Shown: positions 39,019 through 63,097 of the stretch, piece by piece
How positions within the stretch are numbered: the stretch's first letter is position 1
How the letters are laid out: the number at the start of each line of letters is the position of its first letter
Source of the DNA: Perna viridis
Taxonomy: Eukaryota
DNA length: 64,000 bases
Assembly: GCA_037379345.1 (NCBI GenBank)
Contig: CM074520.1
Coordinates: 8,866,001-8,930,000 of the forward strand
Reading direction: 5' to 3'
Notes under the pieces: model-generated
Databases searched by the model: none
Told to the model about the DNA's origin: nothing
Seen by the model: the letters and a program-made list of their open reading frames with translations, nothing else
Made by a program: the position numbers and the translations under genes

Positions 39019-40407
39019 TCACAAGCACCGTAACAGTCTTTTTGCTGCATTTCTGAATTCGAGGTCCATAAAAGCATAAATAAATGGATTTGCGATATTG
39101 TTTATAATGAATGTCCGATATAACCAAACTACCAAGCTCGCCTGTGAGCGAGAAAGTCTTTGCCAAAAATCTGGATAAAACCCTTCCAGTGTCAAGATGG
39201 ATGATACTGGAATAAAACACACAAGGAAGACTGTTGTAACTACCATAAACATAAAGGAAAACTTGTTCATCAAGCGACGGTTCCGCTTCTTTTTACTGTT
39301 TCTTTTCTTTTTCTTTGGTGTAAGATTATCCGACGTTGTGTCGAATGACGCCAAAGAGCCTGCGGAAAATGACGTTGTTGATTTCAGCACATTTGAGCCT
39401 GTGTCATTCTCATAAGACATTCTATTATCAGACGACGAACCAAACCCAGCTGTTAGCACTCTATTTTTGATTATTTGTATTTTGAGTAAATTGATACCCG
39501 AACTTGATGTGCTTTGTAATTTTTTTTTCTTCCCATTTAAATTCGAGATCGGTTGTGTTACCGAGTATCTACCAGTTTCTATATTCGAAAAAGCCCGACG
39601 CCGTTGTGTAATATCACTTTCACTCTCTTCGGTTTGTGATGTCTCTGAAATCCCTTCGTTTTTGCCTGCTTTAGATGATAAAGTTGAGTGTTCATTTTCT
39701 GATTGATTGTTCGCATTTCTATTTTGGAGCTTTTTGAAATGTTTATAAATTGCAAAACCAATTTTCCCGTACAAAATTATGAACGAAACATATGTACTGA
39801 AAATAAAGGCAGAAACAACTATTCCATAAGTTGCTCCAACAAGGTGATTTTCATATTTCAGTTTGTTGCAATTTGATGAAATTATTGTTCCATTACTTTT
39901 TAAATGCACTATTCCGTACGTCAGACATAAAGGTATAGTGAATGAAATGGCACAAAGCAGACACAATAAAACCATAACCCGCCGAGTTTTTAAGCTTAAA
40001 GTTTTCTTCTTGCAAATTTTCAAGTAACGTTGAATAGCTATACACAGTAAGAGGAATATTGACATGTATTCGGAATTTCCCATGAAATAATAGACAACTT
40101 TACACAGGGCCTCGTTCGTGAAGTTTTTCTGGTAATAATTCCAGACGATACCAAGTGATGAACACGTTACACATGCGACCATGTCTGAGACGGCTAAAAC
40201 TGGAATAAAATATCGTTCTTCTGACGATCTGTTCATGTGATTTTTGTAAACCAGAATGACGATCGTATTTCCAACAATGCCTATCAGCATGTAAATTGAC
40301 AATGTCACATAGTCAGGAATCGTATCTCGGTCCCAGTTGAATACGTCCATAGCACCTCTCTTAGGCAACGTACTGTAAGTTGTGTTTGAGGCAATACCCA
40401 TTTGCAT
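39019..40407 (-). CDS. Rhodopsin-like (class A) orphan GPCR, paralog 4, 462 aa
   Basis: 7TM; GN, ERYFIPVLAVSD, LCK, IAIQRY, CFIP, NPFIY; long Ser/Thr-rich ICL3. Acceptor ttcttatag at ~40420. Confidence 0.93.
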   Translation of the reverse strand: MQMGIASNTTYSTLPKRGAMDVFNWDRDTIPDYVTLSIYMLIGIVGNTIVILVYKNHMNRSSEERYFIPVLAVSDMVACVTCSSLGIVWNYYQKNFTNEALCKVVYYFMGNSEYMSIFLLLCIAIQRYLKICKKKTLSLKTRRVMVLLCLLCAISFTIPLCLTYGIVHLKSNGTIISSNCNKLKYENHLVGATYGIVVSAFIFSTYVSFIILYGKIGFAIYKHFKKLQNRNANNQSENEHSTLSSKAGKNEGISETSQTEESESDITQRRRAFSNIETGRYSVTQPISNLNGKKKKLQSTSSSGINLLKIQIIKNRVLTAGFGSSSDNRMSYENDTGSNVLKSTTSFSAGSLASFDTTSDNLTPKKKKRNSKKKRNRRLMNKFSFMFMVVTTVFLVCFIPVSSILTLEGFYPDFWQRLSRSQASLVVWLYRTFIINNIANPFIYAFMDLEFRNAAKRLLRCL

Positions 40408-41162
40408 ATATTTCTGCGTCTATAAGAAACTGGAATGCGAGACAACTTTAACAGTTTTCAGTTTATTAATCCTTAAGATGAAGCATTTGTGTATATTGTT
40501 GATTATGATGTTACCAATTTTATTAACATCCTTGCTTTTTCTAATCGAAACATTTGCACGTTGTATATGAACAACTTCGGAAATTATGAGAATTACATCG
40601 CGTTTCCGATTTGTTGTGATTGTGTTTATTTTTTCTACTTAGTATTTTTATACCGTACTTCCGAACGTCACACGTCCCTTTCGTCCTTGTCATGTAGTAT
40701 GACTAAAAGGAAATCGTACACAAGATCCTTGTAACTTTTTTATTGAAGTGATTTATTATTATTTTTAAAAATATATCTATATTGAGTGTATCTGTAATTC
40801 TATGTAAATAACGTTATTTTGTTGACGAAACACGACAGATGGTCTATCAGATGTTTTACTATCGCTTTGCAACCGTTGTCATCAATTGTTTATGTCGCAC
40901 CATCTAACAGATCAATAGATTTAGGATAAAGTTTGTAAACCTTGTAATTGAGAAGGGTGTATTATAGAGTCAAATAACTAACAAAATACAAAAGAAAACA
41001 TAAACGAATTAGATTGAATTTATTGTCATTGTAATAACAAAAATAATTATATTTATCTGGAAGAAAACTACATTCTCTCAATGGAAATACAAATGATACA
41101 ATTGTTTTACAAGCAGCTGCATGACTTCGTTAACTTTATGAGTTTTGCTTTTTTTTCTTCAG

Positions 41163-44100
41163 ACATTGACACAGTTACTACTTTTATAAGAGTGGTCGTA
41201 ATTTCAAACAGTACAGGAACGCTTACACCCAGCCAAGCATGCGCATTAACGTCTACTCAACCTACTGGTACTCAGGAAGTTTTGATAAGGACAGGTATAG
41301 TAAAATGAATTGCATATCTATACGAGTATATTTAGTATTACTAATAATAAATGCCAGGAATAAAGGGAAGATTTTATTCTAATTTCTATCCCTTAGTCAG
41401 TATTAAACATTGTTTATCACGCTTACCTATTGCATAATGTCACATGTATAAGTGTATGAATAATCAAGGGAACCAAGGTTATAGCGGTAATCAAAAGAAT
41501 GTAATCCAGGGGCAAAGACCAGACATAGAAAACAGACATACACAACAAAGAACATAAAATAACTAAAATCATACATACAGAATGACAAAAGCAAATGAGC
41601 AACTCGGACTCCACTAAAACATGGACCAGGTGCACCGGTAGGGTAAGCGTCTTCTACTTTTTTAGAAACACCCACCGAGTTGCTCATAAAAGTCAAGTCC
41701 GGGGTAGACAAACGAGGAACTTTAAGGAAAACCATGACCCGTTGAATAAATCAGTTTTCATGGTGCAGGTGGATACACTAGCATAAAGTATGAGTTGTGA
41801 TATGAACATTCCATACACAGGTGCTGAAAGGATGTTGTCACAGATGAAAGGAAAGTTGACAATTCTGATTAAAAAGTCGTCACGTTGGTCGTAAAAATTA
41901 TATTTTTCATTTAATTTTCAGATTCTGTTTCGTCTTCTACGGTTAGCTGTCCTGGGTCTCTTAACTTCAATTTAGCTGCCATCATTCAATCCTCAGGTTG
42001 TAGTGGGAGTTCTATCCTCGGTGCTTCATCAGTTACTCAACATACTTACTCGTACTCTTCATGTGTCACATCTAAGTACTCAAGTAAGTGTAGCTGTCGT
42101 GCTTTAATTTAAATACGAAGGGTGCAAAGTGACTTACAATGGTAAAATCATGACCATTAAATATTTGATATTGATATTATAATATTTTCTATAGATGCAC
42201 TAAATAGCAAACTCCAACACATATAAGACGCTGAAATGCAAACTTAGAATACGCTTGTTATACTTAAGTCGTACTTAGTCGTAGCCAAACCGTAGAAAGC
42301 ATCACCGCTGACTGCGTACTTTAATTTGTTTTAGGTAGAGGTATATTTGACTGTGTGTATTCTGTCACTGAAGGAGCCTATACCTATGTAAATGTATTTA
42401 ACAATGATACAAGCGTCGATGAAACAACAACATACAGGTATCTCTGTTATGTAAGTTTCAAATTGGTAATGCATTACGAATATTAATGGCTACTTCAATT
42501 TTGTATTCAAGTAATATTTCGTATCGGTTAGTTTGTAATAATTTCTTATAGACTTTTATCTGATAAAGACAGCTTTGACCCAACTAACCTAAAAATTAGA
42601 CCTATCAATTTTTCCATTCATTTATTGTATGTATAGGGTATTACAATACTCCATTCTACTTTCTGTTCTGATGACCTTTCTGATCAACCAATCAGATTTG
42701 ACCTTCCATGATTTTGAAAGCATTATTCAAAGGAAACAAAACAGAGGATTCTGAAAAGGTCACCTGAACAGAAAGTAGAATGGAGTTTTGTTAGATCCTA
42801 TTTGCTGTGACTGAATTGAACAATTGATAGGTCTAATTTTAATTATATTGTGACTCAACAAAAATGTTTGTGCACTAAATACCTAATCAAAAAAGCTATA
42901 TTAGTTTTGTCTGATAAACACTTTGTCCATTATTTAATCAACATCTATTTAGTTAGGTAAGCTCTGTTACAGAGAATTTCATTCGGTAACCTACTCGTCA
43001 CATACATCTTTGAGATCTGTTTTGAATTGCGTCATCTTTGTATAAATATATATAAATATAATTATTATTTCTATGTTCAGGTAACGTGGAGTAGTGGTAA
43101 CATTGTGTATTATACATACCACCCAAAGATTTGCCAACCGACACAAACACCGACGGTTACTGGGTCCGACGACGGCGTTGCTGTCGTCGCCTATTATAGT
43201 AAGTTATAAGACAAATTCTCGATCAACATCGTTTTGAGGGGAAGTGTCATTTAAAGGCTGTTCATGTAAAAATCAGACAGATCCTTTGATATTAGTGACA
43301 CAGGGTAAATTTTATCCAACTGTTCCAATGTAATGTTTATGCCATATGTAAGTAAAAAAGTATAAAGTTCGTTTTGAATCGACAACGAATGGCTCAGAAA
43401 ATTGTTTTAAAGTTCCGTAACAAAGCAACCAAATTTTGCTCAAATCAAAGAGTTGTCTCCCTTGTACCAATGAATTTAATGCTTTCTACGTAATTTATTT
43501 TTCTTCAGTCACTGCAGTTAATCCAAAACCAACATTCAACTTTGAGAAAGAATGCATTTTTGATATGAAATGAATGAACATGTTTTTGAAACAGAATTTG
43601 TCTTGAGCCACCCACTGCCTGGTTTTTGCATGGATACCTCTTAAATAAGAATATTCCTAACCTAGAGCTGAGGTCAAATTCAACTAAAATTTGAATGTGT
43701 AGCAAACATGATATATAAAACATGATATAAAGTATTACAGATTGAAAAGAAGGATAATCTACTTTCAGTGCAAATCTACAGTGGTTTCGACCAATTGACA
43801 GTAAAATATATACCGTTATAAAAATTAAGATGTTTCGGTCTTTAGAAATTAACATAAAGATATAAACGATTCCCTTATTATACAATAATTCGATAGTTAA
43901 ACAATTAATGTGTGATATTTTAATAGGCCATTGAAATCCGTCATATAGGTCTGTATTCCTTCCTGGTTATCAATCTATTTGTTTTAGGTTTCTCTGACGA
44001 TGTAGCCAGCCAAATAGCCGTTGGGGTAATGTTTGGCTTGATTTTGTTAGCTTTAATCATTGTAACGGTAATTTTTCTCGCCCTGTTCCTTGATTGTCGT

Positions 44101-45381
44101 CAAAAACTAATTAAGGCTTGTTCAAAGAAAAAACTAAAAGAAAGTTCAAAAAAGACAAAAGGGGATAGTACAAATAGGAAGAAAACAGACAAGAAAAAGG
44201 AGAAAAGAGATAAGAAGAAAAAGAAAAAGAAAGAAAAAGTGGACGAAAACCAGAATATTGATGCATCCACAAAAGTGAGACGGAAAGACTCTTTATGGGA
44301 AAAGGTCAGTGATCATTTTTGATGACATCTTCAAAAATTGTAGTAAGTGGTTTTTATTTTGAATTCAATTCTTTTTACTTCGTAAATCTTTCTTATGAAG
44401 AATTTTATGTTTTATTAAAGAAACAGATCGGCATTTGGCAAATTCGGACATATCACAACAATTGAAATTAAAATTCGAACATAATTGAAATAAGAAAGTA
44501 GTGGATATTACTTGTTCATAGATTTTTTATCTTTCATTTCGTTTTCTTTTCACAAGGAAAAAGAAGGTGAAGGACATATGAAGTGGGCGGATTTTGTTGG
44601 AATTAACTCAAGTGCTAGGGAATATAAAAAACCTGTATGTCAATGTATTACAATTTAATTCCTCTGTATAGTATATGCTATATGTATGCTCATCTTAATA
44701 CTTTGTTTGACCTAAACTAGGTACAGAAATTTGATAGAATTATGATAAAACGAGAATTCAATTTGAAATTGTTACCCCGTTTATTCGAATCTTTCCAAAA
44801 AGTGTGTTTTTCAACTTTACTTAGTTTTTACTGTAAATTAAGACACTTACTCCCGTTACACGTGAAACAGTTGGATTTCTAAAACAGTACTTTTAGCGAT
44901 ATCTTTTGAATGTTCTTTTAAGACAGCATATTGTAATTGGTACTAACATATACACGGTTATCTAAAAGTTTGCATTTTATTTCTAATTCTGTCAGGAAAA
45001 CGTATATCTATATTTAGTGGTAATAAAATTATTTTATTTGATTTTTTCTTTTAGGAATGGCAACAAAAATGGGAAGATTATAAGGATCCCCTACGGGGGA
45101 AAACAATAGTATTCGATGGGGGTTCGGAGACAGCGCGGAGTACTGATTCCGTGGCTAGCACAAGTAAAGTTGTCTGGATTTTACCAGAAAAAGAGGAAGA
45201 AGAAAGAACTAAGAGTCTTTGGGACAAAGTATATCGACTGTGGTTTGAACCAAGGAAAACTATACCAGAAAATAAATTTCTAGAAATGCAAAAGTTAGCA
45301 AAACTTGCCAAACCAAAACATGTCCGGTTTAAAGGCACGGTAAATAAGAGTAAAGATGATACTGCTATTGAGAGCAAATGA
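41163..45381 (+). CDS. Cys-rich type I membrane protein, paralog D (5'-incomplete; exons 1-3 not found)
   Basis: Manual GT-AG model: 41163-41294, 41922-42083, 42335-42450, 43081-43198, 43988-44304, 44557-44634, 45055-45381. Continuous frame of ~415 aa: ...SQACALT...SCPGSL...GIFDCVYSVTEG...YRYLCY...PKICQP...TM (IAVGVMFGLILLALIIVTVIFLALFL), then a Lys-rich tail. Confidence 0.8.
41461..41900 (+). mobile_element. Dispersed non-autonomous repeat, longest copy in the window
   Basis: taatcaagggaaccaagg...gcaaatgagcaactcggactccactaaaac...gaccaggtgcaccggtagggtaagcgtc; at least 7 related copies in the window. Confidence 0.75.
42592..42840. mobile_element. MITE with long TIRs, in an intron of paralog D
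   Basis: aaaattagacctatcaatt mirrors aattgataggtctaatttt; actccattctactttctgttc mirrors gaacagaaagtagaatggagt. Confidence 0.8.
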
Positions 45382-45706
45382 TTCGATAACATTAGTAGTG
45401 TTATATATATCAATGCAATGCACCCAGTCACATATAGTAAATGGGAAATAATTATCACAAGGTAAACTACAAATATAAAGTTATTATATTTCAGTGACAA
45501 CAAATGTATGTTTACCTTTTGCATTGTCGAACGTGCCTTACTGTACATATGAGGTTTCCCGTTCCACTAATATCTGTAGTTGACAAAAATAACGTAGAAA
45601 TTTCATTATAATGTTTATTGAATATTTATCGTTTGTTAGTTTTTGCGTTTGTTATGTTTCATTCGTTTCTTTTGATTCAAATTAAGAGTATTGTTCTTGT
45701 CTTGAT

Positions 45707-48700
45707 TTAAGTTCTAGTTGCCACGTCATCGAATCTGTATACTGGCGCCTCCTTCCGGAAACACGAAAGTTTCTTCCGGTTGCAGTGTAACAAAAATATA
45801 ACTGTACATGCAAGACTAAACAAAACAGCACATACTAAAATCACTAATAAACTTCCATTTATAGTTTTTTTCCCGTCAGTTTGGGACATGTTCCAGTCGT
45901 TTTTCTCTATAAAATAGAAAACGATAATCCAAAAGATATGCATATTCTACACAACGGACAATTAGTCACTCATGCTTAAGGAACGCTAATGTGTTCACCC
46001 ATAGGATATTAAATCGGGATTCGTCTTCATATTTAGGTTGCTAGTTAATATTAAACTTCATTTGTAATTAAAAAAATTCTAGGTAAATATAATTTTCTAA
46101 TTTCTGATTCAATTTCCAGAACATAGGCCACAAATTAAATTAGATTAAAGATGATTTACTTAATGATTTTATATTGAGTATGTACACGGAAATCAATCTT
46201 TATCGTACGGAACAAAACTGGTATATATCATTGTTAATAAAATTGTAAAAAGAGTTATCTGACATGCTTCCAAAGTATTTGAGGCCACTGACCTCTATTT
46301 GCGTTATTTGAAAAACAAGTTAAAGACAAATACTTTGTTTGACCATTGCGCTTGGATGTATTTTATTTTTTTTGTATTTCACAAATAAATTCTTTGTAAA
46401 TGAATTTTACTTCAAGACAGTTTCAAGAACTTTTTTGGTACTGAACTATTTGCCTGTCAACAATATATATTCTATCTATATTAAAATCATGAATGCTTAT
46501 CATAATTACTACAGACCATACTTACTATATGCTTTTATTTTACCTTTTTGTTTTAGCAGTTCTAAGATCAATATCACTTCATTAGATTCACTGCATACTT
46601 CTGACATTATTGATATTCGATATTTATCTTCAAATGTTGTAATATTCTAGAAAACAGATAAAAATAATGAAAACAGAAATAAAAAAAAATGTTATATCAT
46701 CAAATCTTTAATCTAAGTCAGCAACAACAACAACAAATTTTGCTATTTGTTACAAATGTACAATCTTCATAATCACGAGGGATGTGTACGAAAGCTCCTA
46801 TGTATTTGAATAATTGTAACTAATATTCCGTCCAATACAAATGTCAAATTAGCTGCAAGTGTTAGCATACAAACAGTATTGAGGCAAGATATAACAGCAA
46901 AAACTAGCAATTAGAGACAACATATATCATGGAAGTCAAATAGCTAGACATAGCTTTCTGAAAGATAAACTTACCGACCATTGAGAATATTTCGAAAATA
47001 TCTCATGATGCTGAGGGACAAATGGAATAATAAGTACCGGTTGGTTGCCCGCAAAAGTATATATGAACATTAGCGTAGTTGAGGTCAATTGCTTTTTTTT
47101 GCAACAAACCAATAATAGCTAATTTTGTTACTCTTTATTTGCAATAACAAACAGGCAATTACCAGACAGAAGTAACCGTATGGAGACTTCTTCAATAAGG
47201 CAGTATTGTTTGTCCAAGTGTACAAGTAGTTTCCAAACTGATGAGAATAGTGTAGACAGGTAAATGTGGAAACACCTAAAATCAAAACAATACAAAGTCA
47301 AGGACAAACTTTGTTATAGTGATTTATAGATAAAAGTCCCAAATCTGTTATAGTGATAATGAAATGTGTGGCACAATGTGAAAGAGTAAATCAAGGGAAC
47401 CCAGATACTTATACACATGGTTATGCAGTACAAATGTTTAACCCTCACTGGTCGGCCAATGACAAAGTCAACATTTTGCATCAGGAACCCAAAAAGTCAT
47501 TTTAATTTATGACATATAATAAATAATGTGTAGAAATTTCATTCAAATTAAACATGGGAACGGACGAACGGGACGACTATGGACCTTGCACTTTTCAAGG
47601 GTGGTAGATTAAATGAAACAGAAGCACCATTAATTGATAAATAATATCTATTAAGGTATCATGTACTCGAACAGACATCAGTAAACTTTCAAAAATGTAC
47701 ATTAGTCGCATTAATTTGGGAAAAATATTTGCCTACTTCAAAATCACTACTTAAATCTTACCAAAGTCATTCATACAACTGCTATCAACATAAATACTAA
47801 GCTGCGGAGATGTATGTGAGCTATTTATGAAGCCACTGTAGCATATATTGCTATTTGATCCATCTGATGTATTATTCCCATAAATACCGTTTATTATACT
47901 GGGACAATCTTCTCCTATTACATCGGAAGTTTTTGATACTGAAATTGTAAAAAAGTTATTTGTTTTTATTTGTTTATAAATGTTATTACTTATATTGATA
48001 ATTGTTGCACGTACGATACATGGTAGCGTTTTATCACCTATAATATCCACAACGGTACAATAATGCACATGCTTACTCTATAACCGTAACTGAAAAAAAA
48101 AAAACGGTTATCAGTCCCGGGTAGAAACTTGTTATTAGCCTCAACTGACCAACTAAACTGATAACTTATTTTTACAAGCGGTGTTTTCAAATATGCATTT
48201 TTTCAGTATCAAGCATCTAATAAGATAATGGAAAATTAATATTATATGATGGACAAGACTTATACAGACCATTTCGAACTAGAGTCAGCTCCTTATCAGT
48301 CCCATTTGCACAAGAATAAGTGAAATCAGGATCGTTGTGACCAGCTACAAACTCCTTAAGCAAGTTTTCGTAATCTAAAATAATATGATAGCTAATCATA
48401 GTGGCGACCTGGCGATTATGATTCGAGTGAACAGTCAAATTCAGATTATTTCATTTCAAGTCATATTATGTTATATATGACACCTTTCTATATCTGTTTT
48501 TTTTCATACTTGCTAGTGGATTAAAGGTGATGGAACTTGTTTTTGTTTTAAATTTTAGAAGATTAGGTCACAAATCATTATTCCAGATGATAAGAAGGTG
48601 GTTCCCAGTTATGCAATTGCAAATGAAGATTTCAGATATTTACTTTCAATATTTAATAATACAAAATGGTAAATTCTTACCACTTCTGATTTTATATCTG

Positions 48701-49823
48701 AATATATCTTTAGTTAACTGTATAATCTCTAAACATAAGAACAGGTATACAGGATTACCAAATACAGGAACAGTTCCAGAAGATCTAAGAAAACAAGGCA
48801 TATATGACGTTGTAAAATTTGGCTTAATTAATCATTTATCAAAATAGGATAAACATTTTGAGTCCATATATGTCTTTCCCCCTGTCAAAGGCGTGATTAT
48901 TCTAAAAAAGTCTTTTTCCGGTTCATCACTGATCTTGCTAGTTCATTTACTATTTATCGCCCTTACCGATTTATGATAATGAATTCAGTGGTTTTGTTAA
49001 CAATTCTAGACATATAATTAAGTTTTAATCGGTACACATTGACAGTATTTACACTGTGAAACACATGTAACGGTTAAATAGATAAACGAAAAAACAAAAA
49101 AACAAAAAACAAAAACATAACCAAAAGAAAAAAGTAATAAATATAAAAATAACTAACTGCTTGCTTGACTTATAGAAACATATAAAAATACTTTAATTTC
49201 TCCAAACAGCAATATGAATTATGACAACTAAGTTTAAATTTGGTCTTCCGTGCGAGAAACAAGTCAAAGTTAGAACACTCCTTATTCGATTTGAATTGTA
49301 ATTGAAAAGTGACATTTTTGTGGTTGGAATAGCTGTTAATTATTTTCAAATTGATATTTTATTGTCATAGTTTTTTCTACAATTAATGACATTGACAATA
49401 AAGAATCCTTTGTATGTTTCATATTTCCTTACTTCAATGTGTAAAGGGTTCCATTACTACTACTGCACAGAAAACTTAATCTTTCTCCACTAGGGATTGA
49501 TGTTCTATAGCCATGAATGGCAGATACTTCAAACATCATTGCTCCATTATAGGTGCTGATCCACAGACCTCTTAAGCTTGATGGGAAGGAGCAAGCGGCA
49601 CCTAAACAAGAAAAATCAAAATACTGCAGTTGTTTTGTTGTTTATTATTTCATATTTGACGGAAGTTATGAACAAAATCTTTACAAAAATACTGGTAACA
49701 AATTTTTGTGAACTAATCTCTGATTTATTCATAAACAAAATATAAACAAAACTTACCTATTTTATGTTGAGGAATTACTGCCAATAACACTACTGCTAGT
49801 ACTGTCCATGTTTTGGATTCCAT
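45707..49823 (-). CDS. Cys-rich type I membrane protein, paralog C (345 aa)
   Basis: Exons 49823-49757, 49601-49433, 48784-48681, 48374-48270, 47938-47762, 47275-47163, 46646-46544, 45906-45707; all GT-AG and in frame. Signal peptide MESKTWTVLAVVLLAVIP; CSFPSSLRGLW; 10 ectodomain Cys; TM LLVILVCAVLFSLACTVIFLL. Confidence 0.82.
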
Positions 49824-50378
49824 CACAAATCACAGTACAGATGTATGGATGATTTTTCAACCAGATTATTTTTTTTATGCGTTAAATAACATGTTGTTGA
49901 TACACTGTTTTATAAAAATATAACGGTAGATGGAAAACAATGAACCCAATGTAACCTTAATTGGGCGTATAAGCCACGTTTAATCGGTTGTGATTTAAAA
50001 GAAATTCAATTTACAAAGAACGCAGTCTTATAGTGTTAAATGAAAGGTCATATTATTTAATGAAATTTTAATACCACCAAATGCACTGCTGCAAGTGTTA
50101 AAGTATAAATTAAGATATGAGATGTTGTAATTCGTTAGATTTTCTAATACCCAAGAATATTCATCATTCGTTTATGTATATTGACGTATGTCAAATATGT
50201 AGGAAACAAGGTACTTCGTTGAAATAGGTTTAATTTGTGAACTTGAATAAATTTGATAATAATACAACAGTATGATAAACGTGCAAGTAATATTTCTGTT
50301 TATCATGTATATTGTTCCTTCAAAACTATAATATAAATAATTATAACAATATCAAAATAACAACAGTGCATCACACAT

Positions 50379-53300
50379 TTAATCATCAAAAACATCTCTG
50401 TACAATGGGCTTACTTTCGGTTGTAGGTAAAGAACTGATCTCGGGGAAGATTTTGGATCAAACAAAGTCCAATTCGGTATTGCCATTTTCTTCTGCACAC
50501 GTACACCCCTGTTTGCACGAATTTTACAAGGATCAAATTTTGTTTTACTGACAACATCTACATGTATAGTCGATGTACTTCCAAATAAATCTAAATGTCC
50601 TTGTCGAGGCCGTCTTTTAGCGGCTCTGTATCTTATAATTAAGTATGCAATAACTAATATAATGAACAGAACGGGTAACGAAACCAAAACCCATAATCCA
50701 AGTAGTCCAGAGGCTGTTGAGTATTGCTGAGCTAAAAGAAATATATTGCAGATAAGTTATCGGATTCGCTTATAAATGTAAATTATTCTCAAAAATAATT
50801 TTCATTTGTTGATTTTGTTATTAATCTTTTTGTTGTATGAAAAATAGAAACTACCTACCCTCCATGAATTAACCCTGGTTTCTATTTAGTTTGTGAAATA
50901 CAGTTTATGTGGATTTGTTTTGTTTTTTCGTGATAAACGATTTCAAATGTAGTGTCCAATTCATTTGGTACACCCGACGTTGTCTTACTCATAGTATGTT
51001 TCCTCGATTTTGACTTCGGTTTTTGCTGTTTCCAGTCCTTGTCGTCATTAAAGTCCCATGGGTGACCTTGAGCTGACATTTTTCATCCTGGTGGGGTTGT
51101 TGTCTCTTTGACTTATACACCATTTCAATTCTCGTCATATAAAGGATTAATCTTAATTTAATCATAGTTTTGATTAAAAAGATAATATCTTTATATCGAT
51201 TAGAAAAACACTTTGATATAATAAAAGTTTGTTTTCTAATTTGTTCAATGAGCATATGAAAAAAATTACCTGATGCAACTGTTGTTGTTCGAGAATTTAC
51301 ATCACACGCATCTGGAACAAACAAGAAGTTTATATCATGTCATTCTGTGTCAATCGTTGTATTTCATTATGTATAAGTATACTAATAGCCGGGTAATGTA
51401 AAAGCTTGATTCTTTCAACTTTATAATAAATACATAAGAATCAAACGTTAAATAAATAACAACAATTCATTCATTCAATTATGTCTATATAACATTAATT
51501 TCACTAAGAACAACAATAAGCAATCAAGTAAATACCCTAATTCACACTTTAAAACATTGCTCCAAATGACCCCAGGACTGTTTTGGCTTCATTAATTATT
51601 GTGACGTCATTAATTATGTTGATAGATGGAGAGTACAGTACTAAAAATTCTCTCACTAGTAGGTCAACATTTTTACAAAATGATATCCTAACCAGTGGCT
51701 CTGATATTTTATTTATTAAAGAAAAATGTAAAAATATGCATTATAATAACTTTTTTGTTTCATATTCTTCATAATTTTCCTAATTGTTAATTGAACTATA
51801 TTTCTTTCTGAGTATTTTTCATTATTTAGCTTAAAAAAAAATACACGATTATTTTGTTCATATTGATAAAGGATCCGGGTAACCCAGAGCCCTCCCTTTG
51901 ACCAACTTCTGAGACTATAGAGTAAAGTCAAAGTACCTGATATATCTGTGATGATTATACTAACGCCCCCCCCCAAAAAAAAAATGTCTCCATAGTGGTC
52001 CAGTCATCGTTACAGTGTACAGAAATTTCTGTGATAAATGTATTGTTTTCTTTTTTTCATGGCCTATAGGCAAAACTAACTTATAGAAATCATTTTTTGA
52101 ATGTCAGGATTAATAAAAGGGTCAGTTTAACCCAGAGCCCCTCTTTTGACCTACATTTGAGATAATCGAGTAAAGTTAAAATACCTTCTATATCTGTGAT
52201 GATTATACTAACGCCCCCTACCAATGTCTCCATAGTGGACGAGTTATCGTTACAATGTACAGGAGTTTCTGTGATATATGTATTGTTTTCTTGCCTTTTC
52301 ATTGCCTACAGGCAAAAATTAACTTATGGAAATCATTTTATGAATTTAAGAGTTAACATGGGGATAGACACAACAAAAACTAATATTGAATCACCAGAAG
52401 TATTTAACCACATGTACCGGTTGCTTCATGTACACTTATAGGGTTCAAAAATCAAGTTACTTGATTGATCGTTTGAAAGCATAGAAACTCCCCGGTCCAT
52501 GCTCCATTTTTTTAATGAAGTCCGAGTTGATCATGTAGTTTTGTTACTTTGTACGCGTTTTCCTTTGGTTATTTCATGTTCTTTGTTGTGTGTGTCTGTT
52601 TTCCGTTTCTATTACTCTTGAATATATACGTCAAGTATAGATGAATGATAACTTTTTTTCAATTTAATCGTTTACACTTTCCATAATTATGAATACAACA
52701 TTTTATGTGCATTGGTCATACCCTCACACTGTTTTTGAAATACCTACCCAACAACTGAAAGGGTTATTTACTTCTCTGTCTGTGTTCCAAACCGACAAAA
52801 ACGTCTCTTCACCGTCTGTTAATGATTGTAGGCAAATATATGCTCCACTATCTGTTTGAACACAGAAGAATTTGATTTGTATAAAAATGAAACTACTTAC
52901 AAGTTTATGGCGCTTAATACCAACAGAATAATCAGTGGTAATGTTAGGCACCTCATTTATTTAAAATCTAATTGCAACCCTACTTATTTCCTTCCCTAAT
53001 ATGTGACAAATACTACAACAAAAACATAAAAACTTAAAAGTGCGTTTGTAAAATATTTCGAGTGTTCAATTTTAATAGGGCGGAGGATCATCCAATTGAA
53101 TGAGGCACGGTTAGTGGACATTAAGGAGTAGTAAATGATTAGAAATTGTAAATAGAAACCACCTTCGATGCATCATTTTCCTGTTAATGCTTATTACTTC
53201 TTATCTCGAGCAATATAAGCAATTAGTTCTCGATACAATGATGGAAGAATTGCATGACATCAGGGTCCAGTTTCATAAAACATCTCAAATTAAAATTTCC

Positions 53301-56166
53301 CCAAATCCTTCCTCAAATCGTCAATTTCAAGTGTTCTGATTGGTTGAAATATCAGTTGAAGAAGAACTTGAGCAAATCCAGGCCAGTTGTAAGTTACAAA
53401 TAAGTACTCGTCAGGATGATTTTCGACCACCACTCACCTGATAGAGTTTTAGCAGTTGGTGTATTCGCACAGGTTCCACTGTAGTTAATTTGTATACTTG
53501 TTCTATCAGTGCATCCATCGAGGTGTGTCCCAACACAGCTGTAACTGATTGGGTTACCATGATGTTGGACAGTAACATTGTTATATACAGCTACTACTTC
53601 CGATGGGCATGTCATGTTGACTTGGCTGATTTGACCTGAAAAATTAATATAATTGCTTTTATGCCACCTTTAACGTTATCTATAGTGTTTTTTTACGACG
53701 AGGTCGTCGTATAATTGTTTAGCGCTGTTGTCGTCCTTGTCGTCGTCTGTGTCGTCGTCGTCGTATCTTAAGTAGCAGTGTGTTGCTACTTCTACAATTT
53801 CACAACAATCTTTCGAACTACAAAGGATTTTTGGTTATGGCCCGAACCATTTTAGAATTAGGGACCGGAAACATGCATTTTCTTGATGTCTATATAATAG
53901 ATTGTGGAAATCTTTAAAATTAAATTGTGCCGAAAAGTGCGTATCCTCATGCAGAGGTTCGAATTTTTTCTAGAAATCTTATGACATTAGCGAACGAAAA
54001 TCTAGAGAACAACAAATGCACTGAATCAACGTATATATATATACCATCAAAAATCATAAACAAAGAACATGAACATACCCCAACGATCATTGGAGGTCAT
54101 AATTCAACATGTAACTTTAAATATTGTGCTGATAATTCATGTTGTCTATAGAATTAAGTTCCTTATTTACGGTTTATAATTGTGTAGTACTTTTATTAGA
54201 TATGAAGTAAAACTAGCATACTTACCATTTCTAACCACAGAAACAAAACTCTTTGGGGAAGGTGATAGAGAGCAAATTTCATTTAATGTAGCATTCCCAG
54301 ACCCATCTCCATACAAACTGTCCCGAATAAAAGGATTATAATCTAGAAAGGAAACCATTTAAGTTTAAAGTTTTGCGATAATATTAAATTACTTGTTACT
54401 TTTATTGATACTAACTTATGGAGTAAAGTGAGTAAGTTATTTTATTTCTTTTAGCGATTAACATTGAATAGATTTAATTTTGTATTAAGGATAAAAAATC
54501 GAATTAGCATTTAATTAAAACGATTCATAATAGTAGGTAATATCATATACATATTTGTGAAGATTTTGAAATGATTTTGTAAAATTATGTGATGGTATAC
54601 ACAGACAAATATTTTTCATGCGAAATGCATGTTAATCGAGCTTCACCCAAATTTCACGTGAACTCTGTCACAAATTTTATTTGCGACTTTGGGCCATCGA
54701 TTGCTGAGTTTGCGTCAGGCGAGTCACCAGTTTTGGAATAGTTATTCTTACCACATAAAAAATTATTTGCGACGTAAGCATTCTTTATCCCATAGCAATC
54801 AATTCTTACTGTCTGTTCACGCTTACTTTGGAGTAACCGGCACATTATTTTCTTGTTGAACTAGGCTAAATATTTTAATAATTTAAGTCCTCTATTTATT
54901 CACAGCGAAAGAGAAGATGGTAAGAAAAAGTAACATTCATTATTTTCTTATCAGTCTCGGAAAATTTATAAAAAAATGATTAACAGGTACAGTTTGATCT
55001 TCATTACAGAGATAAATTCTTTAAGAAGCTGTAAATTGAAATATTTTTATGACAAATTTAACTTTATATTGTTTCATTTGTTTCATAGTATACAATCATG
55101 GTATCTTAGACCTCACGTGTTATTTTACCTGTTAGTTGATAATAGTAGGCTACGTTGATGTTATGTACGAATATCTCAAGGCAGAGAAATATCTCTATAT
55201 TGTAACTAGCAAATAGAAAGGTGAATGTCGATCTGCAAGAAAAATGTATTTGCTGCCACCTTTGTTTGTTCGAGTACAAGCTGACTGTTCATTAAAACTA
55301 TCAAATGTTTTTCTCTTAAAGTTACACAGGTGTTGGTAAAGTCAGGCCTTATATTGTTTTCAAAGAAAAAATAAGATATCTTAAAAGGCGCCTCTTTAAA
55401 CTACCTTCAATCATTTTATATTCTGGTACGATTGTTTTTTGTGATTGCTTTTCATTTCGTATTTTGACAATCGACTCTACTTTTTTCCCATTTTTAATTT
55501 TCACTCTTGCCATCTGTATGGCATGCAAAAACAACTTTATTCTGTATTAATTAGCCTTATTATAATATGAACTATATGTTAAAAACACTCAAATACAGGT
55601 AAAAACAATAAATACTTGAGCACGTAAATATTTTCCTGATTTTCATAACAGGTGAAGTTAAGTGTGTCTGGCAAAGTGACGGTTTCCTCTGAAGTTCTGT
55701 ATGACGTCACGAAAGACGAGTTTGTAAAAGTAACAAGACCCCGGTCAGCTCCGATCCAATCACCAGAAAGATGTTGTGGAAAGACACATTGTCCATCTGA
55801 AGAAGCAGCCAGTGATACGTCACATAAAAAACGAACATTGATTTTGGTTAAAACTTGAATTCCAGTAACTACTCAAAACATCCATTGAATTTCTAAATAT
55901 CTAGTTTACAGCTAGCAAGTAACTTACATTCAGTCTACTTCCAAATTGGAATGGAACAAATTGAATCAATCTCCGGGATAAAATGAATCAAAACATTCAT
56001 AAAAAATAAATGCATTCAAAAATGTATCAAAACTTTATGCTCTATAATTTAGAACGCTATGGTTTCATCAATGACATGCATTTATTATCAAATTAGAACA
56101 AAACTTACGTATTTCCAGTAGAACAGAAATGAATGTACAGACTACAACTACAAATAAAATTCCCAT
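50379..56166 (-). CDS. Cys-rich type I membrane protein, paralog B (425 aa)
   Basis: Exons 56166-56109, 55796-55616, 55232-55129, 54342-54226, 53635-53438, 52851-52748, 52305-52185, 51311-51270, 50731-50379; GT-AG, in frame. Signal MGILFVVVVCTFISVLL; CVFPQHLSGDWIGADRG; 12 ectodomain Cys; TM GLWVLVSLPVLFIILVIAYLII. Confidence 0.88.
51937..52063 (-). pseudogene. Duplicated copy of exon 7 of paralog B (frameshifted pseudo-exon)
   Basis: Tandem duplicate of 52185-52305 with flanks and intact AG/GT sites. A -2 and a +8 indel at homopolymers give an in-frame TAA at codon 18. Confidence 0.75.
52478..52620 (-). mobile_element. Partial copy of the dispersed repeat (family of 41461-41900)
   Basis: ccggtccatgctcc...agtccgagttgatcat...tcatgttctttgttgtgtgtgtctgttttc. 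Confidence 0.6.
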
Positions 56167-57575
56167 TTTCCTTTTCATAAAAGCATCAAGTGATTTCTGT
56201 TTTTGAAAGTAAAAAAATAATTTTTACGTGAAAAAACAATGACAAATCATTTTAAGGGTTAAAATCACCTAATTGGAAACTCCTTTATTAATTACTTTCC
56301 GCTACAATGACGTTATTGTAGAATACTGGGTCTATACTGGGGTATACCCTTTCACAAGTACAGCCTCATTCAATCAGTTTACACAAAATGTTTACTCATT
56401 ATTACCTTATCTACTATTGTTAATTATTTGTTAAGGTATATATTTCCATCCCCTAGCTTGATCGGATCATACCTAGTTTTTATAGGTCAGCAATAACAAT
56501 GCTATACAAATAAGGATGTTTTGCTGGTCGTGTATGAAAAAGAACTAAAGTCGTGGAAAAATGTAGGAAACCCGGGTATTGTTTTTATCTACAAATCATA
56601 TCTATATGTTGGATAAGCTTTCTAACCTCTGTGGCTTCTTATTTTTTGTCATTCCTTTATATAACAGGCTTATTTTTTTGTCTTTACTGTAACATTATCT
56701 ATTAATTATAGGCATTGTAATTTTAATAATAAATTTATCAGATTTTACCCTACAACAGTGATGGTGATATTTGTAACATTTAGATTGCAGTGTTTATATC
56801 TGGCATACTTGCCTTTTCATTATACATACGATTAAAATATCATAACCGAATTTTCTATATGACAATTTATTTTGAAAATAGATAATCAAAGCAGGCTCGT
56901 AGCTAAGAAAATTCTGATTTTATTTGAGAATTTTAGAAATGCTATTACAATATACACAAATCGATCTTTACGTTCAAATATGCATTAGTAACATAGACTA
57001 ATTAGTTTAAGGAAAACAAAAATATTGCATATCGGTAGTCCACATAATGTGCACTTCCAAATTTGCATTTGCATCGGATGCAGCTTATAATCTTTAAGAA
57101 TAACTTAAAACACATTTCAACGTATGATGTTTCGTTTTATTTCACCCATTATAGGGGTTGTAAGTCTCGTTCACGGAGTCACGTGACGAGACTTACATAC
57201 CCTATACTAAAAATGCTGTTGTTAGGTATTACAAATATCGCAAAAGAGATCCGGAAGTTTCTTTAAGTGTCAATATCGGTTAAAATCAGAACTAACATTT
57301 CAAGGATAGATAACTGTCAAAAACCTTATTTGTCAAACATTTTATTAAAAAAAATTCAGTGATGCAGAGCTTGAATAATAGTCTTTCTAAATAGAGAAAC
57401 TAAAGCATCCTGGAATGAAATTTTATTGTCAGATCGATGGATTTTTGTGTGTGTCTGATTTTTCTTATATTGCCTGATTCTTACAAAAACTAACACTTAA
57501 AGCTTAAATAAAAATAAAATCAAAACTACCACTTGACGATAATATCGCATTAAAATTGTATTTTTTTTTAAGGCA

Positions 57576-60500
57576 TCACACTTTTCCATTGGGTATTCTT
57601 TCAGAGCTAAAGCTGTAGAGACTGATGCCAGATGCTCGCCTTGGCAATCTTCCTCTCAAGTAATCGTCTAGAGAATCATGATACAAAGGTTCTACCTTGG
57701 CAATCGGTTGTAAATTAGGATGATCGGTTGGTTCCCAATCAGGATCAAATAGGGGATAAAAATTCAATGGCTTTTTAGGTCGGAAGTTGTACAGCTTTGG
57801 TTGTCGGATAACGTTGGGTACAAACACGGTTTTGCTGACAATATCTGCCGTTCCAGTTCCATCATCGGTGATTGGTGGAGGCTTTTTCTTACGCTTAGGC
57901 AATTTAATTCTTGCACAAACGCAACCATATTTCTTATAACAGTACCTGGCTAGCAACAAGATTAGAATGAAAAGAAAGAGTATCGGCAGTATTAACAGAG
58001 CCCAGAGTCCTGCAAGGTTTGGTGGTGCTTCGGTTGTAGCTGAAAAATGTTAAATTGGCATAACTACTATGTTTATTATTAATTAAGACATCATGCAATG
58101 CATATTTATCTTCGCTTACTTAACGTTTATTTTTCTATATTACTTAAGTTTCTTACAGCCATCTCTTTTAATGTTGATTTTTTTTGTGTTACTGGAATTT
58201 GTTTAACGCCGACCTTCTTAAATGTTTTTTATTACTTATCAAATTCTACCCACCCGGCATTCTCATATGATTGACCTAACAATCGGTTTTATATGACACG
58301 CAACACTATTAACATACAATGTTTGTATTCCCATACATACAATGTTTATATTCCCATACATACAATGTTTATATTCCCATACAATGTTTATATTCCCATA
58401 CAATGTTTGTATTAACATACAATGTTTGTATTAACATACAATGTTTGTATTAACATACAATGTTTGTATTAACATAAAATGTTTATATTCCCATACAATG
58501 TTTGTATTAACATACAATGTTTATATTCCCATACAATGTTTGTATTAACATACAATGTTTGTATTAAAATGAAATTCTGAGTGGTGTATGAGCCTCTACA
58601 AATCTTATTTACTTACTTGGGATAATTATTTCACATGTTCCTGAAATGGAAGAAATCAAACATATATTCCTTTTCTTGAGAGATAGTAACAAGCCTCCAT
58701 CCCTTTTAAAATGAAGATAAATGCGATCTTAACAATATGATAAAAATAACTCAGTTCCTAGTACTAGTTATTCAATTTTTAACAGAGTTGCCACGAAATT
58801 GAACTCGTCTTTTGCTTTGGTGATGTCGGGTTGGCGGGCTGGAGGCCGGTGTTCGTCAACAATGGTTTCCGGACTATAATTCGAAAGATTTAAATCCAAT
58901 TCGAACAATTGAGATACAGTTATATACCAGATATGTAAGATTCCGATTGATTTTAATAAGTTCAAAGACACAGCGCCCCCCCCCTCCCCCCAAAAAAAAC
59001 CCTTTAACTTTTTCGGTATAATTGAGGTTTCATGACGATAACTTAAAAGTTCACATCTGATTCAAATGGAACTTTGGGATTTTGATACATATCAGGAAGC
59101 ATATTGATTTATAGCATATTACATTCATGGCAAAAAAAATTAGATTTTTTCATTTAATTAGGTTGTATAATATCAAGGTCCTTTACAGGAATAAAAGCTA
59201 CCAAAAATAATCATAGCTGGGACTTTATGATCTCAGGAACAGGCTTTATCTGTATTGATATGAGATAATGAGGGCTTAAAAGGTTCACACCTGATTAAAA
59301 AAGGAGTCACAGTAAAAATATTTCTTTCATGAAAATTGGGACTCAACTGGGCTTTTACTTACCAAGTATATCCCAGATCACAAGTTTTACTCCACCAGTT
59401 TCTGCAACTGTCGATGATGATGTATTTGAACAGAATTTCGATGTCTCTGTCGCATAAATGACGTCACCGATACGTCGGTAGGCCTACAAAAATGTCTAAA
59501 TTGTACTTAAATGCGCAAGGAATATATAATGTTATACAATTGTATGAGTGTAAAGGTAAAGTTCAAGGCGCAAATCATTGATAACCAATGCAAACATTAA
59601 GTAACTTGCTATTTAATGCTTTGAAATAAGTTATTTTTAACGGGCATCTTTTTTTTTATTTTGTCCTGGAAAATAACGTTAAATGTTCATTTGTGTACAT
59701 AAAAACTCACAAAACAGTAAAATGGATTAGGCCCCAAAGGATCATCATTCCATACAGATAGAAAAGTATCGGATCCTTCTGTTATGGAGTGTATACATCT
59801 GTAGATTCCCTGATCTGTAAGAAAATTCACAATCCATTTACAACATCACATTGAAGATCTGACAAACTAAAACTAAGAGGATTGACAACTAACATATTAA
59901 TTGCAGGGCAGTAATTAAAAAACATTATAACTTAAAAAAAGAAACCCTATATACAGGAAAATAGAAACATGCTTTTCATATGTGTCGCAAAACACCATAA
60001 ACATATCTTTGTCATATTTATTTTTGATGAAAAAACATATGTTCCATCTGGTAACAAAATGCTTTCAAAAACAATCAATGATAATCAATGAAAATTATAA
60101 AAAGTATTGTGAAATACTAACCAGAAAGTGTTTTTGCCGTAGTTGTCGTGGCACATGTGTCATTATATGTAATATTGATCATTGTTTTATCAGTGCATAC
60201 ATCAAAAACAGTACCAGGACACATAGTAGGCTCTGCCTGAGACTCGTGCTGGATGGATACATTGCCAAACTGAGCCTGTATTGCTTCAGGACATGTAACA
60301 TTGACACTTCCGTCAGAAACAGCACCTTCAAAATCAATTCATGGAAAGAGTAATCAAGGGTTATAGCGGTAATCAAAAGAATGCAATCCAGGGACAAAGA
60401 CTAGACATGGAAAACAGACATAAACAACAAAGAACATAAAGCAACTAAAACCATACATACAAAGTAACAAAAGCAAATGAGCAACTCGGACTCTACTAAA

Positions 60501-63097
60501 AGCTGGGAGCATGGACCAGGTGCACCGGTAGGGAAATTCATGAAAATACTTTATTACAAAATGTCATTTCAATTTACACTAAGTTAATCCAACCCTCAAA
60601 GGCTTAAACAGATAATACAAAGCATCTTTTTACTAAACTTAGTTTAGTTTTTTTTTTATAAAACTAATTAATCTTTAAAACCATTTACTCTAAGGCCTTA
60701 TTTAATCTGCAAGACTACATATTCTATCAATGACATGGTGTTTAATCAATTGATCCAAATTCATTAAATATAGCACAGGCTTATTACTATTTTTTTAAAT
60801 TGTCTCTATACTACTATTACTTATTTGACTTTGATAGTATTACTCACCATCTCTAACCAATGTGATATAATTTCGTGGAACAGCTGGTTTTGAACAAACT
60901 GTATCAAACGTAGCAGTATTTTGGCCATCACCAACAATATTATCCTGTAGATAAGGATCATATGCTGGAAAATCACATATAAGAGAAGTTATTTCAGGAA
61001 ACAAGCCGCATTTTGTTTAATATGTTCGCTGTTAAAAACCGAACTTTCCTGATTTTTTAATTTTCTAATATTATCGACAAAAGTATACCGAAGCGTAAGA
61101 AGTGTGATTCAAATACATCAAAATCCCAAAGCATGGTCTACATATAAACACATGAAACAGGAACGATCTACATACACAATGTAGCAAACCAAATAAAAGA
61201 AAAGAGTATTTGAAACATTCGGTGGTTTGTATTCATTTCAATTACCCACTGCCGACAAATTGACTTCAAAAGGATTACACAGTACCAAATCTGGCTCAAC
61301 AGCTAAATCTGATTTGCTAAATGAGAAACAGAAAGCTTGTTGCAAATCACATTAAACTAAATAAAGGAAAACCGTCTATCATCAAAATATGTTTTCAATA
61401 ATTTTGTGATTTAAATTACATTTATTATTTTATTGAAAATAAATTTTTGGTACAAAAAAGAACTATGATTTCAGTAAAGTGAGAACTACTTAAGTTTGGG
61501 TGGCGGTGAACATAATAAGATATTCTTTAATTGTAAGACATTATGAAAATCATTTGAATTCGCTTTTAAAGTAAAACTTAAATCATAATTCCACCTGTTA
61601 ACTGGTAGTAATAAGCGATGTCTTCATCTACTGTAAGTATCTGTAGACACATGTAAAACTTAATAATCAAACCGAATATATTGTTTTCTTGGAATGCTCT
61701 GAAAAATATTAAAAAAAAAATGCAAATAAAAATGAAATCAACATAAAACGCCTTGGCGAAAGACAACGTCAAATAAACATATAGACAAAGAGAACAAATG
61801 CTATTGCGAAAACACTATCTGATATGAACTGATCAAGTGACATTCCTTGAAAAATACAAAGCAAGCATTAGTTGGCAAGGTGCAACTGCACTATAGGCAG
61901 CATTGTGTTACCGCTTTAAAGAAAACACTGTAACTGATAACATAATTAGCGTATTTTGAAGGCAAATGTAGAATATAGACTGAGTTCGTGTTTTTTTTTT
62001 TTTTTGGAAAAAGGAGAGAATGATAAGATGTACATAAAATATGGATTATTTTAAAACATAAACTGATACCATAACATTATGGAGCCTGATGAATTATATA
62101 TAATGCTGGTGGTATCTTTTTGCATGACTTCTCAAAACCGGCATTTTACATTGAGCAATGCTGATCAGACTTAACGAATGATCTAATTACAATTCATTCA
62201 AGAAAGCAAAGCAATATATGATGGCACGAAAATGAACTAGAATATACAGGATGAAATGTACAGAAATAAACAAAACAAAAATAAATCCCTATCAGCAACT
62301 GGAGGAGGATAAATACTCACTTCAGATAATATTGACTTCCCCTTTGTTCTAAACAGTAGAAATCAAAGTGAATTACATTTGGTATGTTAACGCTATATTG
62401 CTGTATAACGGTAGAATTATAGAAATTCATATCCCCTCTATCAGCTCCCTTCCACACACCTGACAAAGTCGATGGAAAATCACATGGTTGTGAATCTGAA
62501 ATATATAAATGGTAAAATCGTAAAATACCGGGTTGAACAAAAAGATTTTTTCATGAGGAAGAAATGAGACATATGATATATCATTTATTATATCTTTAAA
62601 GTCAGGTGTTTACATAGCTTTAGCGTGCGATATGTTTTCTTCGTTTCATTCATTTCATCAGTGGCATCAGATGGTTGAGATTCAACATGTTCATTAGTAT
62701 GCTAAACCTAAACGCTTGGATGTAACGTAACACGATTCATAATGTTTGCATCCTTAGACATTTAGAAAATCCTTAAGACATCCTTAGAAAGATTATTTCT
62801 ACTCTTTTTTTTTAATATTAATATCTTACTTTACTTATTGATTTGATAATGCGACAACTTTTGTAGAGAACACTTTATATATTTTTATTTACAGTGTTTG
62901 TCTTTGAGGTAGTCGATAATGACAAACAAATTTCATGCTATTTTATCTTAAATTTACCCGTCGTCTTTACATTTCCTGAAGGTGTGAAAATTAAATAAAT
63001 TAGGACTTCATAACAGTCCTACCATGGAAACAATTATACTAGACTTACCTCTAATTGTAAAGAATAAGATACACAATACAATTGATACCAAGGCCAT
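57576..63097 (-). CDS. Cys-rich type I membrane protein, paralog A (453 aa)
   Basis: Exons 63097-63049, 62495-62321, 61698-61595, 60964-60848, 60325-60122, 59814-59711, 59483-59363, 58640-58617, 58039-57576; 1362 nt, GT-AG, in frame. Signal MALVSIVLCILFFTIR; CDFPSTLSGVWKGADRG; 12 ectodomain Cys; TM GLWALLILPILFLFILILLLA. Confidence 0.9.
58306..58567. repeat. 19-bp minisatellite, ~13 copies
   Basis: Interspersed variants catacaatgtttgtattaa and catacaatgtttatattcc, in the last intron of paralog A. Confidence 0.92.
60351..60535 (+). mobile_element. Copy of the dispersed repeat (family of 41461-41900)
   Basis: High similarity to 41461-41645: taatcaaggg...gcaaatgagcaactcggactc...gaccaggtgcaccggtaggg. 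Confidence 0.75.

Follow-up and report, generated by a model that had tools for sequence, protein, structure and literature searches.

A stretch of 64,000 nucleotides (nt) from Perna viridis (contig CM074520.1, 42 Mb long in an assembly of 723 Mb, positions 8,866,001 to 8,930,000; hereafter the window) raises the question of whether the small open frames in its right-hand part are pieces of split genes belonging to one family and, if so, what kind of protein that family specifies. The window is AT-rich (~32% G+C), contains no runs of N, and its genes find their best protein matches in Mytilus. A preliminary description had proposed a hidden tandem family of four uncharacterized, cysteine-rich, single-pass receptor-like genes, here called A, B, C and D. 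The analyses below leave little doubt that A–D are real genes of one family built to one exon plan. That they are neighbors within a family of type I membrane glycoproteins found throughout the molluscs, taken jointly with the explanation that their ectodomains would capture a ligand, is a reading we consider somewhat probable.

Gene models were rebuilt from the letters of the window, with canonical AG/GT sites. Between 45.7 and 63.1 kilobases (kb), the stop-to-stop frames of the minus strand form three collinear series of pieces that resemble one another; canonical acceptors and donors flank the pieces, and the joined frames of A, B and C are open. Coordinates are given in Table 1. The three genes lie head-to-tail. 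As originally described, the intron phases read from the splice sites are 1,2,1,1,1,0,1,1 in A and B and 1,2,1,1,1,0,1 in C, which follows the same series without the micro-exon; exon 3 is of identical size in all three genes (104 nt) and the other exon sizes are near-identical. The three complete proteins were said to comprise 453, 425 and 345 amino acids (aa), and these lengths recur: the first is that of A, the second that of B read from its second ATG, and the third that of C when exon 7 ends at the nearer of two possible donors (46526 or 46544; the other gives 351 aa). The joined proteins were used locally to establish lengths, phases, alignment, tree and rates of divergence.

The protein features first proposed, namely a signal peptide, a domain 1 motif, a single membrane span and many glycosylation sequons, are likewise present. 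The motif C-x-[FYW]-P-x2-[LIVM]-x-G-x-W (described initially as C-x-F-P-x2-L-x-G-x-W) has exactly three occurrences in the six frames of the window, one per gene, in exon 2 of A, B and C. A local script finds a hydrophobic N-terminus and one strong transmembrane segment in each protein, together with 6 N-x-S/T sequons in A (counted on a 445-aa model without the micro-exon), 9 in B and 10 in C. The ectodomain of A holds 12 cysteines. Pairwise identity is 40% between A and B, 24% between A and C and 23% between B and C.

Table 1. Positions of the genes and related features, in window numbering.
Feature	Positions	Strand	Size	Remarks
Gene A	63097-57576	minus	453 aa	9 exons
Gene A exons	63097-63049, 62495-62321, 61698-61595, 60964-60848, 60325-60122, 59814-59711, 59483-59363, 58640-58617, 58039-57576	minus	49, 175, 104, 117, 204, 104, 121, 24, 464 nt	stop included
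Gene A micro-exon	58617-58640	minus	24 nt	phase 1 to 1; predicted, ortholog-supported
Gene B	56178-50379	minus	429 aa, or 425 aa from second ATG at 56166	9 exons
Gene B exons	56178-56109, 55796-55616, 55232-55129, 54342-54226, 53635-53438, 52851-52748, 52305-52185, 51311-51270, 50731-50379	minus	70, 181, 104, 117, 198, 104, 121, 42, 353 nt	
Gene B micro-exon	51270-51311	minus	42 nt	phase 1 to 1; encodes DACDVNSRTTTVAS
Tandem copy of gene B exon 7 plus flank	51850-52103	minus		degenerate; found by self-similarity of open frames
Gene C	49823-45707	minus	~351 aa	8 exons; short tail, no micro-exon
Gene C exons	49823-49757, 49601-49433, 48784-48681, 48374-48270, 47938-47762, 47275-47163, 46646-46526, 45906-45707	minus	67, 169, 104, 105, 177, 113, 121, 200 nt	
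Gene D	41163-45381	plus	390 aa	5'-incomplete; joined frame open, canonical splice sites
Gene D exons	41163-41294, 41922-42083, 42335-42450, 43081-43198, 43988-44304, 45055-45381	plus		
Four GPCR genes	15450-16670, 24545-25912, 36412-37602, 39022-40419	minus		Pfam 7tm_1 full-length, E 1e-26 to 2e-30
Further family member	71225-73818 (past window end)	minus		exon 4-7 equivalents

For gene A the evidence comes from P0036, an A-type protein derived from an assembled transcript (L014) of another species. The two proteins are 82% identical, both are 453 aa and their full codon alignment is gapless; in a tblastn search P0036 covers exons 2-7 and 9 of the gene at 66-90% identity. The micro-exon, together with its two split junction codons, reads G-TCEIIIP-T and has TTTCAG as acceptor and GTAAGT as donor; at the position of the peptide TCEIIIP, P0036 has STCEIIVP. 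P0036 thereby supports the predicted gene A model, the putative micro-exon included. Just downstream of the micro-exon, the last intron of gene A contains a tandem array (58307-58567) of 13 copies of a unit of 19 base pairs, with 88% matches.

Transcript evidence is available for gene B. Contigs from four runs, each belonging to a different study and all from one organism, were aligned on positions 50200-56199. Introns 2-8 are spliced exactly at the modelled borders in contigs of up to four runs, and in the main contig of each run the joints read CT..AC on the plus strand and hence GT..AG on the strand of gene B. Because of these joints we take the contigs to be RNA-derived, though the runs are labelled only "RNA?". 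The two joints that define the micro-exon (50731>51270 and 51311>52185) are seen in all four runs. The degenerate copy of exon 7, in which the frame is broken and a T/G homopolymer run is found, is left out of the transcript, the spliced contigs passing directly from 52185 to 51311. RNA had been proposed at the outset as a check on the junctions, and it bears out introns 2-8 but not intron 1. Contigs of all four runs are unspliced across 55616-56138, within which intron 1 lies, at up to one third of the depth of the main contig, and in one run (X13) the main contig itself passes from exon 2 into intron 1. This unspliced coverage points to retention of intron 1, to an internal start site or to carry-over of DNA. 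Exon 1 is predicted from the sequence and from the signal peptide found at the same place in P0049, the B-type ortholog of Mytilus coruscus.

Two further features of the gene B contigs were observed. The spliced contig runs on below 50200, toward gene C (~49089-50199), by 1111 nt in run X1 and 1000 nt in run X2; the longer extension equals 443 nt of genomic sequence plus the modelled exons 2-6 of gene C (169+104+105+177+113). It may be a B–C read-through transcript, or the product of overlapping untranslated regions merged by the assembler, and is suggestive only. Three stretches within the introns of gene B (52400-52800, 51000-51200 and 54600-54800) hold copies of transcribed elements that are highly repeated; contig depth there exceeds that of the gene by a factor of hundreds to thousands, and loose ends are numerous.

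Gene C was modelled from the sequence, and the Mytilus galloprovincialis ortholog P0031 supports both the predicted short exon-5 acceptor and the tail YRFDDVAT. An alternative, longer exon 5 (48037-47762) was rejected: the Mytilus ortholog and the paralogs A and B all start at the region of the C-P motif.

Gene D stands on the plus strand and is convergent with gene C, its end lying 326 nt from the gene C stop codon. Its first four exons correspond to family exons 4-7 (phases 1,1,0,1); these are followed by an exon encoding the transmembrane segment and by an extra last coding exon, which matches the C-terminus of oyster and scallop D-type proteins. Four such proteins (P0145, P0176, P0177 and P0090) match the gene D exons. 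The initial account of D as a partial gene is correct for the 5′-end: exons 1-3 were not found by a regular expression for the motif, by an hmmsearch run locally on every open frame that the window contains or by tblastn queries with four orthologs of the D type, and when P0145 was searched against the whole genome they did not appear near D. At the 3′-end, however, the gene extends to the extra exon. It may be truncated, may start at an ATG just upstream (41081), or may have distant 5′ exons. A protein homolog search with P0145 for a mussel ortholog of D returned oyster proteins only.

The notion of a tandem family of four is similarly correct in part: A–C are in tandem, but D is in the opposite orientation and 5′-incomplete, and the array does not end with gene A. 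The next gene past the end of the window is a family member on the same strand as A–C, with an A-like tail (CYKKYGC..., ...KPLYRDTLDDY) and 5′ exons beyond the 10 kb that were fetched; the array therefore extends beyond the window.

How widely the family is distributed was determined with an exon-2 profile built from A, B and C plus eleven further copies in the genome. Searched against 1.84 billion proteins (E <= 0.001), it matched 153. Two of the matches (P0063 and P0139) are repetitive bacterial adhesin-like proteins and were set aside as false positives. All 27 representatives with a source name that was looked up are molluscan, and all are "uncharacterized" or unnamed. Members are carried by mussels (Mytilus species), oysters (Magallana, Crassostrea), scallops (Pecten, Mizuhopecten, Argopecten, Ylistrum), freshwater mussels (Sinanodonta, Potamilus) and gastropods (Nucella, Lymnaea, Patella, Elysia). 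A survey of bivalve orthologs, also foreseen in the preliminary description, shows that each of A–D has orthologs in other bivalves; P0145 is of the D type and P0031 of the C type. Proteins from Magallana gigas (XP_011449364), Pecten maximus (XP_033742589), Crassostrea virginica (XP_022327669, D ortholog type) and Mytilus galloprovincialis (OPL33416, C ortholog type) are of the same length class and share the cysteine frame and the position of the transmembrane segment; uncharacterized bivalve homologs are 36-65% identical to the window genes over aligned columns. The family is thus hidden only when viewed as open frames: several mollusc genomes carry annotated orthologs, under the label of uncharacterized proteins.

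A resemblance to DUF7042/DUF7044-type domains had been suggested, and Pfam scans, which covered single window exons and full-length database orthologs, bear it out on the latter. Taken alone, exon 2 matches DUF7043/DUF7044 weakly, over half a domain and below threshold: against the first half of the DUF7043 model (PF23070), A, B and C score 17.4, 13.9 and 14.5 bits, the gathering cut-off being 27 bits for both DUF7043 and DUF7042. Among the full-length orthologs, P0031 (33.1 bits) and the scallop protein P0016 (27.9 bits) pass the DUF7043 cut-off and P0036 falls just below it (25.8 bits); DUF7042 (PF23069) is matched above the cut-off by P0036 (31.5 bits) and by two scallop proteins, P0011 (32.2 bits) and P0016 (31.9 bits). 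DUF7042 was not matched in P0049, in P0031 or in single window exons. In full-length orthologs the order is a DUF7043/7044-like domain followed by DUF7042, domain 1 matching DUF7043/DUF7044 (PF23071) and domain 2 matching DUF7042.

The neighbors of the ectodomain in the Atlas are mollusc clusters labelled "DUF7042 domain-containing" and arthropod clusters with DUF7042, DUF7043 and DUF7044, and UniRef gives one gastropod member the name "DUF7042 domain-containing protein". All three domains are present in two Atlas clusters, one of them with proteins of ~614 aa, in which most members of recorded phylum are arthropod, whereas the mollusc proteins have two domains, a transmembrane segment and a tail. 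An alignment of 50 proteins reveals near-invariant cysteines at C21, C64, C92, C133, C160, C184, C192, C206, C223, C250 and C269 (P0036 numbering). In their exon plan, their cysteine frame, a transmembrane segment near residue 300 and the orthology of A–D in the tree described below, the genes agree with a single-pass mollusc family combining DUF7043 and DUF7042. Literature searches on the DUF7042-44 names, the Pfam and InterPro accessions and six bivalve LOC symbols found no papers. The family is already catalogued, without an assigned function.

Structure prediction was performed with AlphaFold2 on two orthologs: P0036, with a 50-sequence family alignment, and P0031, with a 46-sequence alignment. 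The predicted local distance difference test score exceeds 90 over residues 20-290 of P0036 and is mostly above 85 over residues 20-280 of P0031. Both models begin with a helix (the signal peptide), followed by two domains rich in beta-strand, a transmembrane helix and a disordered tail, and each half of the ectodomain is predicted to form a disulfide-braced, 8-stranded up-and-down beta-barrel of the lipocalin (calycin) type. Modelling followed by Foldseek had been envisaged from the start; the first step gave confident two-barrel models, but the second gave no match in the PDB at E <= 0.001, the weak rows being other small barrels (TbpB, hemophilin, streptavidin). An exhaustive structure aligner matches both domains of both models almost only to small up-and-down barrels: domain 1 to the lipocalin fold of Tp0751 (Z 8.4 and 8.8) and also to RBP4 and to insect salivary and tear lipocalins, and domain 2 to Bacteroides lipocalin-like proteins (Z 8.0 and 7.8) and also to YLR301w, potempin and nitrobindin.

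In lipocalins the signature G-x-W sits in the first strand after a short helix. In the P0036 model the near-invariant G29 and W31 of the domain 1 motif lie in the first strand (residues 29-33), also after a short helix. Lipocalin-fold chains, among them RBP4, the tear lipocalins and the insect salivary lipocalins, match the 8-stranded barrels predicted here (Z 5.4-8.8); identity in the structural alignments is, however, just 4-16%, and the family is predicted to differ in having two barrels per chain, extra disulfides and a transmembrane anchor. Lazarillo, a lipocalin, is anchored by glycosylphosphatidylinositol. The Lipocalin model of Pfam (PF00061) has no match among single exons or ten family proteins.

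Of particular relevance is APCDD1 (mouse, PDB 8e0r/8e0p; PMC10193966), a type I membrane protein with two apposed barrels, 12 cysteines and a short tail, and hence a layout like that of the family; the presence of a membrane anchor and two barrels in one polypeptide is called unusual by its authors, who show a lipid in barrel 2 (PMC10193966). Barrel 2 of mouse APCDD1 matches domain 2 in both models (Z 6.0 and 5.8, 112-113 aligned residues). The AlphaFold2 models have the same two apposed beta-barrels on one transmembrane anchor, a likeness of architecture only and not of homology: APCDD1 is, by fold only, the nearest solved architecture to the one predicted.

Could the family then be a functional counterpart of APCDD1, acting as a double barrel anchored in the membrane that traps lipidated Wnt, or some other morphogen carrying a lipid, and so dampens signalling? 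The shared build (signal peptide, two beta-barrels, transmembrane helix and tail), the equal number of ectodomain cysteines in A, the match of barrel 2 to domain 2 in both models and the rarity of the arrangement speak for such an equivalence. Yet ten family proteins gave no match to the APCDDC model (PF14921) at E <= 0.01, a search of PDB sequences with the family profile recovers no APCDD1 chain at E <= 10, and the structural match is no better than that of dozens of other small barrels. Furthermore, the barrels of APCDD1 are described as homologous, with highly similar folds (PMC10193966), whereas domains 1 and 2 here are not detectably related, and true APCDD1 homologues are reported from many invertebrates (PMC10193966), where they would already fill that role. 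We therefore regard a shared function with APCDD1 as very unlikely.

A different proposal, made in the preliminary description, was that the family is a diversifying one with a role in immunity or self-recognition. In its fullest form this would be a rapidly diversifying recognition family (immunity, self/non-self, gamete) with positive selection acting outside a fixed cysteine frame. The paralogs are indeed just 23-40% identical around that conserved frame, and at least 15 copies resembling exon 2 are present in the Perna viridis genome, most of them clustered on a single chromosome. In a likelihood tree built from 54 proteins of the family, with support measured by the Shimodaira–Hasegawa-like approximate likelihood ratio test, each window gene nonetheless has its own clade: A is joined by P0036 and four proteins of Mytilus (99), B by two (99) and C by one (99), while the partners of D are oyster, scallop and unionid proteins (95-96). 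The A and B clades are sisters, within a group that also holds scallop proteins. Because each gene groups with its own bivalve orthologs, A–D are old paralogs kept one-to-one and not the outcome of a recent burst.

Rates of divergence are in keeping with this. Between A and L014 nonsynonymous divergence (dN) is 0.10 and synonymous divergence (dS) is saturated (Nei-Gojobori), with no indels; the nominal ratio of ~0.05 gives an order of magnitude only. By part, each of the two barrels shows a dN of 0.12, against 0.05 for the tail, the most constrained portion of the protein, so that the ectodomain changes ~2.4 times faster than the tail, as diversification of the ectodomain might also produce. 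The comparison of dN and dS, which the preliminary description had put forward as a check on the ectodomain, nevertheless indicates that gene A is under overall purifying selection. B and C are 41-43% identical to their Mytilus orthologs and thus far more diverged than A; faster evolution of these two genes is possible, and for them the diversifying-receptor reading is weakened but keeps some probability. For the family as a whole we consider it improbable, and the immune or self-recognition role is withdrawn as unsupported.

The tail itself is of interest. The motif K-V-x-P/L-L-Y, which marks the A/B-type tail, is present in 17 of 61 scanned entries with a transmembrane segment (near-duplicates included), from mussels, oysters, scallops and unionids; in oyster, scallop and unionid relatives it is often preceded by G-P-I-[VI]-x-P. 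It is absent from C, from D and from the gastropod proteins. The tail of C is short, and that of D is lysine-rich with a different conserved end.

Taken together, these data lead to a reading in which the family members would consist of a signal peptide, a DUF7043/7044-type domain, a DUF7042-type domain, a short stalk, one transmembrane helix and a cytoplasmic tail. Standing at the cell surface, such a protein would use one or both barrels to capture a hydrophobic small molecule or a protein modified with lipid; in members of the A/B subfamily the ligand might then be passed on, or the protein internalised, by way of the K-V-x-P/L-L-Y tail. Our best guess for the family is a protein that binds, at the cell surface, a ligand that is hydrophobic or carries a lipid; as a mechanism in its own right, ligand binding is put forward tentatively, and we would judge it rather less probable than its absence.

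Several results weigh against this reading. At the level of the gene models, the contigs of the four runs contain no splice joint for intron 1 of gene B, and none reaches the ATG. At the level of structure, Z values of 6-9 are, according to the tool, in the range common for models without a true relative, and we read them as an assignment of fold, not of homology or function; a search of PDB sequences with the family profile returned noise from the transmembrane segment only and no link to a solved protein; and hhalign detects no relation between domain 1 and domain 2 (probability 0.7%). At the level of function, the literature searches on domain names, accessions and gene symbols yielded no ligand, expression site or phenotype for any family member.

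It is also conceivable that the barrels bind no small ligand at all but serve as rigid glycosylated spacers or protein-contact modules in a cell-adhesion or structural glycoprotein. The 6-10 sequons per protein, the wealth of disulfides and the very long tails or extra length of several members (700-1300 aa) are compatible with such a role. However, the Pfam scans of exons and orthologs revealed no known adhesion domains, the barrel fold is typically used for ligand binding, and the conserved tyrosine motif of the tail suggests signalling or trafficking. A purely adhesive or structural function thus appears doubtful.

The interest of the surface-binder reading lies in what it would mean beyond this locus. 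With exact gene models, checked against transcripts for one gene and against orthologs for the others, three Pfam domains named only as DUFs gain a testable structural idea: two lipocalin-like barrels on a membrane anchor. APCDD1, the only solved protein with this layout, binds lipid and restrains Wnt signalling; should the mussel proteins prove to bind hydrophobic ligands as well, they would become candidates for bivalve chemoreceptors or for regulators of lipid signals. More speculative, and in our view unlikely as a whole, is a general scheme in which proteins combining DUF7043 and DUF7042 would be membrane-anchored double-lipocalin receptors of protostomes: sensors or scavengers of hydrophobic or lipid-modified signals that arrived at an APCDD1-like build independently, coupled in the A/B subfamily to a new K-V-x-P-L-Y tail motif, with the cluster described here representing four functionally distinct, anciently separated subtypes.

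Genes bearing DUF7042 are also found elsewhere in the Perna viridis genome, at 42.34-42.49 Mb of contig C1 and at 14.60-14.72 Mb of contig C9. Those of contig C9 sit in long open frames (661-712 aa) and may be single-exon relatives with a different architecture.

The 26 kb upstream of gene D contain four intronless genes for rhodopsin-type G-protein-coupled receptors (GPCRs), all on the minus strand. These form a tandem cluster of paralogs of 397-466 aa with 31-47% mutual identity. Finally, a minus-strand open frame is common to 60357-60563 (intron 4 of gene A) and 41430-41750 (the gene D intron that follows family exon 4), with 78% identity over 54 aa, and a weaker likeness (37% over 62 aa) is found at 20586-20882, near the GPCR genes: the frame is probably a dispersed repeat.

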